From contig MCFH01000011.1 of assembly GCA_002104945.1 (NCBI GenBank), positions 310,001 through 374,000 on the forward strand: 64,000 nt of DNA. The letters run 5' to 3'. The notes under the pieces are model-generated. The model ran no database searches and was not told the DNA's origin. It saw only the letters and a program-made list of their open reading frames with translations. Source of the stretch: Piromyces finnis finn. Lineage: Eukaryota > Fungi > Neocallimastigomycota. This document shows, piece by piece, positions 9,177-54,503 of the stretch (positions are counted from its first letter, which is position 1; each line of letters begins with the position of its first letter). A program made the translations under genes and the position numbers.

Positions 9177-10632
9177 GAGCAATAAATGGATACTACTTGG
9201 AAATAATATAATTATATAATGTATATATAAATATTTCATGGATCTTAATTACACTAGACAAAAAAAAAAATTACACCCATTTATTAATATTTTTTTTTAA
9301 ATTTTAATTTAAATAAAAATTCTATAAAGTCTTAATTGATTTTTGATTATAAATATAATATTTATAATATCTTTATATTTTATTTATAAATAAAAAAAAG
9401 ATTTTTTTTTAAAAAAAAAAAAAAAGAATAATTCTCCTTTATATTGCTTTTCTATTTTAAATTTTTCATAAAACTAATATTTATTTATTGTTCGGTGTTA
9501 ATACACATCACATTAAATAACAAAAAAAAATATTTATTACATTAAAAAATAATAATAATTACTAGAAAATAATTTCTTTTCTTTTTTTCATAGTATAATT
9601 CATTAATATTATTTTAATAATATATATAATAGAAAAAAATTTTAAAAAAATAATCTTTTTTTTTTTTTTTTTAATTTTTAAATTATTCATCCAAATTTTA
9701 AATCTTTTTGAAAATATTATTTTTAATATAAAAAAAAGAATAAATTTTCCAATTAAGTTATGATAAAGTTGCCAATAAAATTTAAGTTTTTTAATTAAAA
9801 AAAAAAAAAAAACAATTTCATCTAATTTTTATCAATTATAATTTTCAGATATAACAAAAAATGTTAAAAAATGATAAAGAAAAAATGATAAAAAAAAAAA
9901 ATATTTATGATAACAATTAATTTTTTTTTATTTTTATCTCTATTTCTAACTATACTACCAAATCCTTTTTTTTTTTTTGACTTATTATGTGAAGTAAATT
10001 TTTCTTTTTCTTTTTTTCAGTATAAATAATAACAAGGAATAATAAAATGTTACTTCAAATAATAAATTTAAAAGAAAATTATGGATTCCATAAATATATT
10101 TTTTTACTATGGAACCATAAAATAATAATAATGAAAAATTCAAAAGTTTTATATTTTTTTAAAAACACTTTCTTTTAAATAAAATAGTTTATTATGAAAT
10201 AAATTATGGTTTATTTTTATTAATTTTTTGCTTAATTATAATTATAATAATTAATTGTATGTGTATTTTTTTTTAAAAAAAAAAGTAATAAAAACAATTT
10301 ATCTATTATTAAAATTGTCTTTTACTTTGATTTTTTATAAATTACATAGATGATTATTGTTTCTTTTTCTTTTTAAATATCTATTAATTATACATAAATA
10401 AAACAAATAAATTCAGGTAACGCCCTTTAATAACATTTTAAAGAAATTATATATTGATAAAATTATTTATATAAATGTGTTGTTGCTTTTTATTTTTTCT
10501 TATTACTGATTGTTAGAAATTTAAATAATTTTGTTATAGAAATATTTCTTATTTTCTTTTTGTATCATCTTCCTTTTTTTTTTATGAAAATGAAAATCTA
10601 TACTTTATAAATTTTTATTATTGAATGTTTAT

Positions 10633-12459
10633 TTAATGGTTCATCTTTCTCTTCTTGTTGGAAACTTCATTAGCAAGCTTTAAAGCTTGGTCAAGATCAT
10701 TAATAATATCTTCAGTTTCTTCAATACCAACAGAGAGACGAATAAGGGTATCAGTAATACCGAGCTTGGCTCTTTGTTCTGGTGGAACAGCAGCGTGAGT
10801 CATAACACATGGTAATTCACATAAACATTCAACTCCACCTAAACTTTCGGCTAAAGTGAAGATCTTTAAACTGGAAAGGAATTTGTTAGAGGTATCAAGG
10901 TTACCCTTAATTCTAATACTCATCATAGCACCAAAACCTTTCATTTGCTTCTTAGCAAGTTCATGTTGTGGGTGACTTTCTAAACCTGGATAGTAAACTT
11001 CTTCAACAAGTGGGTGAGCTTCTAAGAACTTAGCAACAGCTAAGGCATTCTTTTCATGTTGTCTCATACGAACAGCTAAAGTCTTAACACCACGGTTAGC
11101 TAAGTAACAGTCAAATGGACTTGGAATAGCACCAACAGAGTTTTGAATGAAGTGTAAACGTTCATTGATTTTTTCATTATTAGTAACAGCAATACCCATA
11201 ATGACATCAGAGTGACCATTAATATATTTACTAATAGAGTTGACACAAATATCAGCACCAAAAGTAATTGGGTTTTGGAAGTATGGACTCATGAAAGTGT
11301 TATCAACAACAACAATAATTTCATTGTTAATGCTCTTTACAGTTTTAACAATAGCTTCAATGTCAACCATTTTCATAGTTGGGTTGGTTGGAGTTTCAAT
11401 CCAAATAAGTTTGGTGTTACTCTTAATAGTACTCTTAAGAAGTTCTGAATCACTAATATCAATGAAAGAAGTTTCAATACCTTGAGTGTTGGCAACTCTG
11501 CTAAGGAAACGGTTAGTACCACCGTAAACATCATCAATACTAATAACATGATCACCACTCTTAAGTAAGTTAATAATAGCAGCAGTAGTTGCTGAACCAG
11601 AAGAGAAGGCAATACCTATATATATTTTTTTATTTAAATTGGATATTAATTATACATATAATCCATTATTTTTAAAAAACTTTGTAAATTCATTTTCTTA
11701 ACTAATCTATTTTGTAACATTGAATATAAAAAATTACCATATTTAGCACATTCTAATGAAGCGACAGCCTTTTCAAAACCATTTCTAGTTGGGTTACCAG
11801 TTCTAGAGTATTCAAAACCCTATTAATAAAATTTAATTCATTAATATTTTAAAATTTACATACATAACCATTTTTTATTATTTTTTAATATTTACAGTAT
11901 GAACACCAGCAGCACTTTGCTTGAAAGTAGTAGCTAAAGAAAGAGCTGGAATAACAGCACCGGTAACTGGGTCTGGTTCTTGACCAACGTGAATAGCACG
12001 AGTAGCGAAACCAAAGTTTTCTTCAGACATATTTGTTATTCTATTAAATTAATTTTTCAAAAAATTGAAAATGATTTAAATGTTATTTTCCTTTTTAACT
12101 TATTTAAAGCTAAACTTCAAAACTAAATAAAATTTTGTATATTAAAAAAATATAACTTTTTTATGCTGATTCTACAACTATTATTTCTATTATTTTATAT
12201 CATTTAAAATGTTGATCTTATATCCTTTTTTTAAAAAACTTTTTTATAATTGATTATTAATTTGTCGATCTTACATTGATTCTTTATTTTGTTCTATTTG
12301 TTCCTTAGTATTTGTTGTTGTGCTTAACATATTTTTATTATTTATAATATTTAAATTAAATTGTATATTATTTTTTCTTAAATTAATGTTTACTTTTGGT
12401 AATATACTTTTAAAATTTAAGTAATTAAATTTATTTGTAATTCCAGCAACACTAAGCAT
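10633..12459 (-). CDS. CYS3: Cystathionine gamma-lyase (Cys/Met metabolism PLP enzyme). Catalytic part starts at ATG 12030, with a probable leader exon at 12459-12275
   Basis: MSEENFGFATRAIHVGQEPDPVTGAVIPALSLATTFKQ, FEYSRTGNPTR, AFSSGSAT, DDVYGGT, WIETPTNP, VDNTFMSP, PLP-lysine NSISKYINGHSDV, LAESLGGVE, LIRLSVGIE. Confidence refers to the catalytic gene. The leader exon is less certain (see findings). Confidence 0.95.
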
Positions 12460-14921
12460 ATTTATAACTAAATTTTATTATATTAAAATAATATTCTTTA
12501 TTACTTTATATTTGTGATACAGTTAATTATTTCGATAAATAAAATTGTATTATATTAAAAATTTATTTTAACTAATTTTCTTTCCATATATTTATATTAT
12601 CTATATATTTTATATATATGGTTAATTTAAGGGATAATAATTGTTTAAAAAATAGAGAATAACTATTGGTTAAAAAATTTATCAAATAATTTTAAAAATA
12701 CTATGTATATAATATATTGTATTATATTGTATTATATATTATTTTATGATATAATATATAATAAAAATTTTATTGTAAAAATCTCAATGAGTGGTGAAAA
12801 AAAACCAGTAACAATAACCAGCAGCTTAAATTATTCAATATTTCTTATTTTTATTCTAATACTATTATCACTTTTTTTTTTTTACTAATTACTATTTAAT
12901 TTTTATGTTTATAGCTATTTTTTTTATTATTTTATATACATAATTACTTATAATTAATATATATTTACCTTTTTTTAGTTTGATTATTAAAAATTTTAAG
13001 TGAATCAAAATTATAGAGTATAAAAATATTATTATAAAAAATAAATATTATAAATATAATTATGTTATTTAAATAAATGATCAATATTAATAATATTTTT
13101 TTTACAATTTTATCTTATAATATACCTTGTTTTAAGAGATTTTTAATTAATAAAATTTCTAAACTAAAAAAAAAAAAGAAAAAATTTTACAATTTCCAAT
13201 TTTCAAATGCTTTTTTTTTTTCTGGATCTAAATTAACACATATTAGTTATATTGGTCGAAATTACAGCATCATTAGCCAATTAAATGATTGATCGTACTT
13301 TCCTTCAATTCATAAAATGAAATTAATTAAAAAAAGGAAAAAAAAAATTAATTAAATGAATAAATAACTATATAAATAAATAAATAAGAAGAAATTTAAA
13401 ATTACAAACTTTTATATAATTTACTACAATATGCAAAGTTAAGATTTAAAAAAAAATCAAAAGAATATAGGAATAGAATGTATAAATAACCAATATTTTT
13501 TGTATATGTTGACTTTTTTTAAACTAAAAAATAAAGTTAACTTTTTTTTTTAATTAAAATGAATGGATTTAAAAATTTGTTTAAATTACAATATATGTAA
13601 TATATGTAATATTGGCTATTTTTATATTATTATTATTAATATTACTAATATTTAAACATTAAAAAAAGCCATTAATAATGTTTCATTTTTTTAAAAAAAA
13701 GTTCAAATTATTAATGTAAATATAACGTATACATAGTAATATGTAATTTATTTTTATTTAAATAGTTTTTTAATTGTATTTGCATATTTGCATATATGCA
13801 GGTTTACATTATAATATAGACAAGTGTCTCCAGAAGTTTATTTTTCTTTAAAAAAAAGTAAGCATTAGTTTCTTTTGTTGGTATTTCCAATTTTATTTTT
13901 TTTTTGTGGATACTATTCTTCTTAATAACTCTTACAGAATTTACTTTTAAAAAATATATATTAAAATAAATAATAATGAATTTTTAAAATACAAACATTA
14001 TTCCTAAATATAAAAATATATTATTTATATCAATACGTAATATTCTATGGTTGAATAATAATTAAAAACTAATTGAATTTTACATAAATGATATTATACT
14101 GCTCTACTAATTAGATTTAATAAAAAAATATATATTATTTATTAATGATTATTCATCAAATACATATTAAATATTAAAATATATGATATTTAAGAAAAGA
14201 AAATATACAAAGCATCACCTTCATTTAAAAATATTTAAAGTAGGATAAAAAAAATAATAAAATAAAAACATTACTTTAATAATTAAAACGATGATAATTT
14301 CCACCATATATTTTATTATTTACCCAAAGTCATTACATTTCTAATTGTATATGAATGTAATGTTAATGTCTGATATATAAAAATACATTAAAATATTAAT
14401 ATTATTACATTATATGAATTAGATATATGTCCTAAAATAATAACTGTGATTTAATAAATATAAAATATGATGTATAAAGTTTTTTTTAAAAAAGAAACAA
14501 AATGCCTCCAATAATACCATTTTTAATAATTAGGAATTGTATATATAAAATAAAATAATAAGTTCATAATTACTTATATAGTTTATTTTATATATTAATT
14601 GTTATGTTTACCACAACAACACAATACAACAAGTAAACTACTAAAATTTTTAAATGTCAACTTTTTCATTTATTATAATGAATAATGAAATTTATTTAAT
14701 TTACACATTCATACATTTACTTTATTTTTATTTAAATAAATTAATATATTACAATATACTATAATTAATTTCAATATATGATCAATGATTTCTAAATAAT
14801 AATAAATTAAATTCAAGGTCAACTAATATTACAACATCAAAATATATTAAAATTAAAATTAATCGAATTTATATTTGGATAAATTACTTAACATTAGTTA
14901 ATCGTTGCTTTAAAAAGGAAT

Positions 14922-16134: not shown

Positions 16135-22147
<6,013 letters not shown>

Positions 22148-52566: not shown

Positions 52567-54503
52567 TTAATGTTTTGGTTTGTATTCCTTTGGGCCAATC
52601 ATGTTCTTTGGGTTAACCCATTCTTGATATTGTTCAGCAGTTAAGAAACCTAACTTGATACCAGTTTCCTTTAAGGTAGAGTTTTCCTTGTGAGCAGTCT
52701 TAGCAATCTTAGCAGCCTTTTCATAACCAATGTGTGGGTTAAGAGCGGTAACAAGCATTAAACTGTTTTCTAAGTACATTTTAATCTTCTTTTCATTTGG
52801 AACAATACCAACAACACAGTTCTTAGTGAATGAGACACAAGCATCAGCAATTAATTGAATAGAATCTAATAAATTCTTAATAATAACTGGCTTGTAAACG
52901 TTTAATTCAAGATGACCATTGGAACCAGCAACAGTAATGGTGGTGTTGTTACCAAATACTTGACAGCAAACCATAGTTAAAGCTTCACATTGAGTTGGGT
53001 TAACTTTACCTGGCATAATACTGGATCCTGGTTCGTTTTCTGGGAGAAGTAATTCATTGAAACCACATCTTGGACCACAACCCATTAAACGAATATCATT
53101 AGCGATTTTCATTAAAGAGGTGGCAATAGTATTTAAAGCACCGCTAGCTTCAACACAAGCATCGTGGGCAGCTAAAGCTTCGAACTTGTTTGGAGCAGTA
53201 ACAAAATCAAAACCAGTAAGTTCGGAGATCTTAGCAGCAACTTTAACATCAAAACCAACCTTAGTGTTTAAACCAGTACCAACAGCAGTACCACCTAAAG
53301 CTAATTGAGAAAGTCTTGGAAGAACAGCTTCAATTCTTTGAATACCGTACTTAAGTTGAGTACTATAACCAGAGAATTCTTGACCAAGAGTTAATGGGAC
53401 AGCATCTTGAAGATGGGTTCTACCACACTTAATAATATCCTTGAACTTCTTGGAACAATTATCTAAAGCTTCGTAAAGAGTAGTTAAAGCTGGAATTAAA
53501 GTCTTCTTGATTTCAGTAACTGCGGCAATGTGCATAGTAGTTGGGAAACTATAAATAACAAATAATGAATAAATTATTATTTAAATATATATTTATATTT
53601 TAAATTTAGTATTTATAATTTATACTAATATTTTAATAATTAAAAAAAAATAATAAAAATACATACGTATCGTTAGAAGATTGAGACATGTTAACATGGT
53701 CATTTGGATGAACCTTAATTTCATTACCTAAAATTTCACTAGCTCTGTTAGCAACAACTTCATTAACATTCATGTTGGTTTGAGTACCGGAACCAGTTTG
53801 GTAAACAACTAATGGGAAATGGTCAATAAGTTCACCAGAAATTACCTTTGTTAATTAGTTATATTTTATAAAAAATATATTTTTAATATTTGTATTTATG
53901 TAAGTAATTATTAATAATAATAATAATACATACTTCATCACAAGCTTTTACAATAGCTTCACCAATCTTCTTATCAAGACCGAAGGTCATGTTAACTATG
54001 GCGGCAGCCTTCTTTAAAATACCGAAAGAACGGATAACACTTTCTGGCATAACGGCTTTCTTTCCACCAATTTTAAAGTTTTGGAGAGATCTAAGATTAT
54101 TTAATTGAAAATATTTAATATATATATTTCTTTCATTATAAATTTTATAAATAATTGTATTTACCTTTGAGTTTGAGCACCCCAGTAACGATCATATGGA
54201 ACACGGATTTCACCAAAAGTATCATGTTCAATCTTGTATTTTTTTTCAACAGCAACTTTCCTATTTTATATATTGATAGAACAAATTATTAATACTAAAT
54301 AGATTTTTCTCTTTTATATATTATCTATTTATGAAGAAATCAAAATAATTAAAATATAAATAATATATAACACTATTTATATATGATTTTTATTTTATTC
54401 TTTTTTTTTTTTTTTTATCATCTCTTTTATATATATATTTTAAAAATTCATAATCATACTTTGATTGATTTTCTTCAGAATTTTCTTCTCTTGGATGTTT
54501 CAT
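52567..54503 (-). CDS. FUM1: Class II fumarate hydratase, 5 exons, without an N-terminal mitochondrial-type presequence
   Basis: [98 protein letters not shown] and signature [15 protein letters not shown]. First exon reads [14 protein letters not shown]. Confidence 0.96.

Follow-up and report, generated by a model that had tools for sequence, protein, structure and literature searches.

We analyzed a 64-kb stretch of the Piromyces finnis genome (64,000 nucleotides of contig MCFH01000011.1; hereafter the window, whose positions are used for all coordinates) and found that the cystathionine gamma-lyase (CTH) gene on its minus strand probably has an additional 5' coding exon absent from the public gene model. 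Comparison with related genomes indicates that the open reading frame (ORF) at 12275-12459, which we call the leader, is a conserved coding exon of the CTH gene and is evolving like coding sequence. In relatives, the homologous exon is an alternatively used 5' coding exon, being spliced in frame to the enzyme in some transcripts and skipped in others. We somewhat favor the view, based on sequence features and a structural model, that the leader is a putative mitochondrial-type matrix-targeting presequence which would give the enzyme a dual localization in hydrogenosome and cytosol. An earlier note on this DNA had suggested such an exon and such a role from the letters of the window.

The locus, as read in the direction of transcription, is predicted to be organized as follows:

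12468..12469, minus strand: candidate acceptor AG (tttag/ttataaatATG) directly 5' of the leader ATG, which would receive an upstream non-coding exon.
12275..12459, minus strand: coding part of the leader exon, 185 nt in phase 2 (61 codons and 2 further bases); predicted from sequence, translation and homologs in four other lineages.
12269..12274, minus strand: splice donor GTAAGA (GT at 12274-12273); predicted from sequence, with identical donor and phase in Anaeromyces robustus and Neocallimastix californiae.
12041..12274, minus strand: predicted intron of 234 nt separating leader exon and first enzyme exon; the homologous intron is removed in transcripts of relatives.
12031..12040, minus strand: in-frame linker of 10 nt from the acceptor AG (12042-12041) to the annotated ATG (12030); stop-free in all four genomic loci.
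11896..12030, minus strand: first enzyme exon with the annotated start, 45 codons; found in spliced RNA contigs X1, X3 and X4, with 81-87% identity to relatives.
11820..11895, minus strand: intron of 76 nt; the joint 11819/11896 is present in RNA contigs of three runs.
11738..11819, minus strand: second enzyme exon, 82 nt; from sequence and spliced RNA contigs.
11616..11737, minus strand: intron of 122 nt; the joint 11615/11738 is present in RNA contigs of three runs.
10633..11615, minus strand: last coding exon, with the stop codon at 10635-10633 and most of the pyridoxal phosphate (PLP)-enzyme domain (Pfam PF01053, E value 3e-135).
10300..10632, minus strand: 3' untranslated region (UTR) of at least this extent; RNA contig X1 record 1 reaches 10300, the edge of the compared stretch.

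The coordinates given in the earlier note were confirmed in every detail. In the minus-strand sequence, the ORF runs up to a phase 2 donor with GT at 12274-12273 (GTAAGA following position 12275), and sequence and translation reproduced the acceptor 10 nt before the ATG at 12030, the 234-nt intron and the in-frame junction KES-I-ITN-MSEENFG. No stop codon interrupts the frame across this junction. The leader translation begins with MLSV (ATG at 12459-12457), has an NMLST motif as residues 43-47 and is acidic at its tail end. By count, the predicted long product has 464 amino acids (aa), including an N-terminal extension of 65 residues, and the ordinary enzyme has 399 aa.

The identity of the downstream gene is firmly predicted by sequence comparison to be a cystathionine gamma-lyase of the Cys3/CTH type. 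It corresponds to BCR36DRAFT_581857 of P. finnis (399 aa, 100% identical), which is named cystathionine gamma-lyase in UniRef. Its third exon covers positions 72-381 of the 381 positions of the PF01053 profile (Cys/Met metabolism PLP-dependent enzymes), and in the natural long ortholog P0013 this domain occupies residues 72-447, i.e., it follows the leader. The top nine matches in the Protein Data Bank (PDB), human and yeast enzymes among them, were all named cystathionine gamma-lyase (E values 1e-109 to 1e-122), and synthases, beta-lyases and methionine lyases scored below them in the same comparison. Chytrid Cys3 orthologs were 58-65% identical to the P. finnis protein. The PLP-binding lysine motif S-x-x-K-Y-x-x-G-H-S-D is present as SISKYINGHSD in the exon 3 translation, and the lysine column is invariant across 41 family members (K264 of P0013). 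A second CTH paralog of 411 aa occurs in Neocallimastix (P0021, P0022); it is ~86% identical over exon 3, lacks a long leader and instead starts with 13 unrelated extra residues. Among the best 120 matches, there was no second P. finnis CTH protein.

Compared with the P. finnis model, several close homologs have about 60 additional residues, in an N-terminal extension that is homologous to the leader. Four genomic loci carried the exon:

P. finnis (window): leader exon 185 nt, phase 2, donor GTAAGA, intron 234 nt, acceptor to enzyme ATG 10 nt.
A. robustus (L005): leader exon 188 nt, phase 2, donor GTAAGA, intron 312 nt, acceptor to enzyme ATG 10 nt.
N. californiae and N. lanati (L044, L001): leader exon 170 nt, phase 2, donor GTAAGA, intron 394 nt, acceptor to ATG 10 nt.
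Metagenome contig of a fourth lineage (L054): leader exon 176 nt, phase 2, donor GTAAGC, intron 314 nt, acceptor to ATG 10 nt.

The conservation that the earlier note had proposed to check was observed, with the same phase, the same 10-nt linker and a GTAAG-type donor at all four loci. The leaders of relatives share the MLSV start and an invariant NMLST at residues 43-47 and show 38-71% identity; that of the long N. lanati CTH is 38% identical to the P. finnis leader. Among public models, the 458-aa N. lanati protein (P0011, assembly GCA_016946835.1) has the leader, and the 398-399 aa models of P. finnis, A. robustus and N. californiae omit it. The N. lanati gene is therefore the closest known counterpart of the P. 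finnis gene: it is orthologous, has the leader on a separate phase 2 exon and is spliced 10 nt before the enzyme ATG. It differs in that its long form is publicly annotated and dominant among its transcript contigs. A literature search found no publication commenting on this long form.

The leader matched no Pfam family. A leader profile searched against 1.84 billion representative sequences returned two stand-alone leader ORFs on fungal metagenome contigs, one of which led to the fourth genomic locus (L054), and one low-complexity false match. Since only leader ORFs of anaerobic fungi were found, the leader is shared with no other protein family among these representatives, and a homolog search with residues 1-62 of P0013 returned the query alone. 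CTHs of aerobic fungi and animals lack the leader, the non-anaerobic fungal proteins being mostly 378-410 aa in length. These comparisons indicate that the leader is conserved in Neocallimastigomycota only. We also scanned metagenome contigs with a 26-nt degenerate pattern of the leader start and discarded it as a source of new forms: 2 of the 30 matches were CTH transcripts, both of known types (L038, L041), and the rest were unrelated MLSV openings.

The simplest alternative is that the leader is a chance ORF in AT-rich intergenic DNA which is in frame with CTH by luck. The caution of the earlier note on this point was fair. The G+C content of the leader exon (0.15-0.17) resembles that of intergenic DNA rather than that of the enzyme exons (0.31-0.41), which counts against a coding role, and 17 ORFs of at least 61 codons are located in low-GC DNA of the window, so the leader ORF by itself is weak evidence. 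The random expectation is nevertheless low: an ATG ORF of at least 61 codons on the gene strand occurred in 0.3% of random 500-nt stretches of matched composition, or 0.003 per 500 nt. What makes the leader more than a chance ORF is its conservation in other genomes and its presence in transcripts. A permissive blastn comparison of the upstream region told little, since AT-rich DNA gives alignments of ~60% everywhere; segment-wise global alignments with shuffled controls were used instead. Across the three named genomes, the leader exon scored z values of 10-11 relative to shuffles and the first enzyme exon 21-23, whereas the 200 nt upstream of the leader scored between -1 and 1.5 and the intron between leader and enzyme exon between -0.2 and 1.4 (0.1 and 1.4 when the 234-nt P. 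finnis intron was compared with that of A. robustus, 312 nt, and that of N. californiae, 394 nt). The leader exon thus stands out as an island of conservation. When the leader DNAs were aligned without regard to codons, the gap lengths were 9, 3, 6, 12 and 9, all multiples of three, and differences at third positions exceeded those at first and second positions in 10 of 10 leader pairs, although the pairs are not independent. Conservation, phase, donor and the transcripts of relatives thus contradict a chance origin, which we consider extremely improbable.

Transcripts of relatives showed how the exon is used. In Neocallimastix, contigs L002, L003 and L004 connect the leader exon with the enzyme exon, using precisely the homologous donor and acceptor, and encode a 458-aa protein. 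In the P0013 lineage, L010-12 and L038 splice the leader in frame to give the 461-aa protein P0013, and in the P0018 lineage L050 does so to give the 463-aa protein P0018. Splicing at the donor and acceptor suggested by the earlier note is thereby borne out at the homologous positions. The leader exon was reached from a start directly upstream in L003, L004 and L050. In L002, a non-coding exon ~1.3 kb upstream was spliced onto the tttag/ttataaaatATG acceptor of the leader exon, and P. finnis retains the same tttag/ttataaaatATG acceptor context at 12469-12468. Skipping was seen as well. The Neocallimastix contig L047 joins upstream non-coding exon(s) straight to the enzyme exon, and for the closely related protein P0009, contig L051 skips the leader exon and its sister contig L052 includes it. 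Inclusion and skipping transcripts together mean that the gene yields two classes of mRNA, one for the long form and one for the ordinary enzyme of 398-399 aa. The earlier note had instead suggested that two isoforms could arise from the second MLS of the leader (residue 44) or the downstream ATG; this part did not hold, as relatives skip or include the exon from alternative 5' exons or starts.

Three further observations concern the 5' ends of these genes. First, a slightly GC-richer patch is present at 13200-13340 on the minus strand of the window, ~750-880 nt 5' of the leader exon, and ends in a donor-like AAATT/GTAAAA near 13190; from its sequence, it is a candidate for a non-coding first exon like those of relatives. 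Second, the 5' UTR exons of the A. robustus CTH gene map to L005:1484-1580, 1749-1775 and 1933-1954, the micro-exons being ~27 and 22 nt long, and at the last of the 5' UTR junctions one base (L006 position 142) matches neither genomic side. Third, a 442-aa protein (P0002; L009:1-240) was examined as a third N-terminal form and rejected: a gene caller had translated TGA as Trp and so produced the extra N-terminus. With the standard code, the ORF of L009 has its start at the second MLST, and the preceding 150 nt show no relationship to other leaders. Two readings of L009 fit: a chimeric metatranscriptome contig, or a third 5' form whose translation would start at the internal MLST.

RNA of P. 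finnis was available as assembled contigs from four runs that hold the CTH gene. In the longest one, X1 record 1 (1567 nt, depth 268), the 5' end falls precisely on 12040, the nucleotide immediately after the proposed acceptor, and X3 and X4 end within the first enzyme exon. The end of X1 can be explained because de Bruijn assembly breaks where several upstream contexts meet at a splice acceptor. It is thus indirect support for use of this acceptor, although a contig end does not identify the joined exon, and a repeat may have caused the break instead. Use of the leader in P. finnis itself is something that we infer.

These data bear on a second alternative, namely that the P. finnis exon is little used or has its main effect on the RNA, where its ORF would modulate translation of the ordinary enzyme as an upstream reading frame, the long protein being rare or absent. 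Several results agree with this view and argue against a substantial long isoform. The leader exon (12275-12459) and the junction 12275^12040 were covered by no P. finnis RNA contig of the four runs. All three A. robustus transcripts examined (L006-8) skip an intact leader exon and encode the 398-aa enzyme, their path consisting of one UTR exon and two micro-exons, all located 5' of the unused exon. The leaderless form thus seems to dominate in P. finnis under the sampled conditions, as in A. robustus. In addition, the exon is out of frame in four Neocallimastix-type contigs. Three of them (L046:125-338, L048:30-243 and L049:54-268) have a run of eight A residues after the second MLST where the genome has seven (L044:2900-3110), a frame shift because of which gene callers reported only the 398-aa protein, and L052:1-110 of the sister species is likewise out of frame at its own poly-A run. 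It follows that the long protein would not be made from every mRNA containing the exon. The shift could come from slippage during transcription, from an error of assembly, or from a different allele or paralog. On the other side, four genomic lineages have preserved the frame, the phase and a linker free of stop codons; together with in-frame indels and the excess of third-position differences, this points to selection on the fused protein. Moreover, full in-frame long ORFs are present in transcripts of three lineages, and the P. finnis leader copy is intact and has no poly-A run after MLST. On this evidence, we regard an RNA-level role or near-disuse of the exon as distinctly unlikely.

If the exon is translated, two classes of product would result. 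With the exon included, whether transcription starts a short way 5' of it or a further non-coding exon is spliced onto it, translation would begin at the leader ATG (12459), and removal of the 234-nt intron would give the enzyme a 65-residue extension and a length of 464 aa. With the exon skipped, the ordinary 399-aa enzyme would be made from the ATG at 12030. We propose that the long isoform would go to the hydrogenosome and that the skipped one would stay in the cytosol. The case for a targeting presequence is that the leader is optional, strictly N-terminal, basic and disordered, that it is attached to a normally cytosolic enzyme, and that it occurs in a lineage with a mitochondrion-derived organelle; we find this reading somewhat probable. 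Yeast Cys3 and human CTH are regarded as cytosolic. These two proteins (PDB 1N8P and 2NMP) share family and fold with the P. finnis enzyme (E values 1e-109 to 1e-120), but they begin at the enzyme domain and have no leader exon.

The presequence-like composition described in the earlier note was supported in most lineages. In four of the five, leader residues 1-43 contained 5-8 Lys and Arg and no Asp or Glu, the first acidic residue occurring at position 53-54, and the basic part is followed by a short acidic tail. The freedom from acidic residues did not extend to A. robustus, whose leader has one Glu, at position 6. A conserved basic pair, RK or KK, is present at about residues 27-30. The leader lacks a hydrophobic core of the kind found in secretion signals. 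In an AlphaFold2 model of P0013, the enzyme body was confident, and residues 1-59 had a predicted local distance difference test (pLDDT) score below 50 and no secondary structure; the leader is predicted to be disordered and to lie outside the enzyme fold.

A third explanation accepts that the exon is real and translated, and holds that the extension is not an import signal and is instead a disordered tail for stability, oligomerization, tethering or some other destination. A number of leader properties fit it and, together with Glu-6 of A. robustus, weigh against import. The maximal hydrophobic moment in an 18-residue segment (at 100 degrees) was 0.22-0.47, and a fraction of 0.18-0.97 of shuffled sequences reached or exceeded it; by this crude measure, an amphipathic-helix signal was not above shuffles. 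The conserved I/L-x-L-x-L-x-I/L-Y stretch alternates in a manner that is strand-like rather than helical. No cleavage motif of the mitochondrial processing peptidase (MPP) type was identified in the leader, a trained cleavage predictor not having been used. At 60-65 residues, the leader is twice as long as the fungal hydrogenosomal presequences described below; the internal NMLST and the acidic tail are untypical of presequences; and a similar leader was found on no other protein. The invariant NMLST might serve as an alternative start, or as an element for recognition or processing. Against a non-import tail stand the strict N-terminal position of the disordered, basic segment, which has almost no acidic residues over its first 43-52 or so positions, the absence of a secretion-type core, the supply of the leader by an optional exon, which is the classic arrangement for dual targeting, and its restriction to a lineage with a mitochondrion-derived organelle. 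Weighing both sides, we consider a function other than import rather unlikely, and the targeting presequence remains the reading that we prefer.

Known presequences offer a partial parallel. The malic enzyme and the succinyl-CoA synthetase beta subunit of N. frontalis, described in two papers, reportedly have presequences of ~27 residues with an Arg near the cleavage site, for which cleavage or a role in directing import is said to have been demonstrated. Like them, the CTH leader is N-terminal, starts with ML, is basic, hydroxylated and acid-poor, and appears to lie outside the mature fold. It differs in its length of 60-65 residues, its richness in Lys and Asn, its acidic tail and its internal MLST. 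A literature search found no published link between CTH and the anaerobic-fungal hydrogenosome. Dual targeting of one gene product by alternative splicing has been described for malate dehydrogenase of Yarrowia lipolytica (PMC3372373), where one gene gives two mRNAs differing only in the N-terminal targeting segment. The CTH case differs in that the organelle would be the hydrogenosome and the enzyme is not known as organellar. Mechanisms of this kind are well established, and the present result is a correction of gene models with a putative organellar isoform.

We further considered that the leader-bearing CTH may be imported into hydrogenosomes, in an amount set by the use of one 5' exon, and make cysteine or sulfide inside them for Fe-S assembly and the cysteine-dependent steps of [FeFe]-hydrogenase maturation. 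This is a tentative extension which we hold to be possible but on the doubtful side, and any such supply of cysteine or H2S by CTH within the organelle, to serve the maturation of Fe-S clusters and hydrogenase, is speculation. If the long isoform is imported, sulfur amino acid metabolism would join the known energy metabolism of the hydrogenosome. The protein content of this organelle is still largely inferred from predictions, and the long CTH is a concrete candidate for an unrecognized activity in the fungal hydrogenosome. At the level of annotation, the public CTH models of P. finnis, A. robustus and N. californiae can be corrected, a conserved coding exon probably having been missed in all three, and regulated alternative use of a 5' exon is documented in a fungal phylum for which little has been described about splicing.

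Other genes and ORFs were also present in the window. A class II fumarase gene with Lyase_1 and FumaraseC_C domains is located at 52567-54260 on the minus strand. Its most upstream recognizable exon starts at an acceptor near 54262, and a further 5' exon must therefore supply the start codon. Fumarase is a classic dual-localized enzyme in other organisms. Three long ORFs of 470, 460 and 877 aa occupy 16135-22147 on the plus strand and had no Pfam match at an E value of 1e-5. Several further ORFs of 61-300 codons are located in very low-GC DNA of the window.

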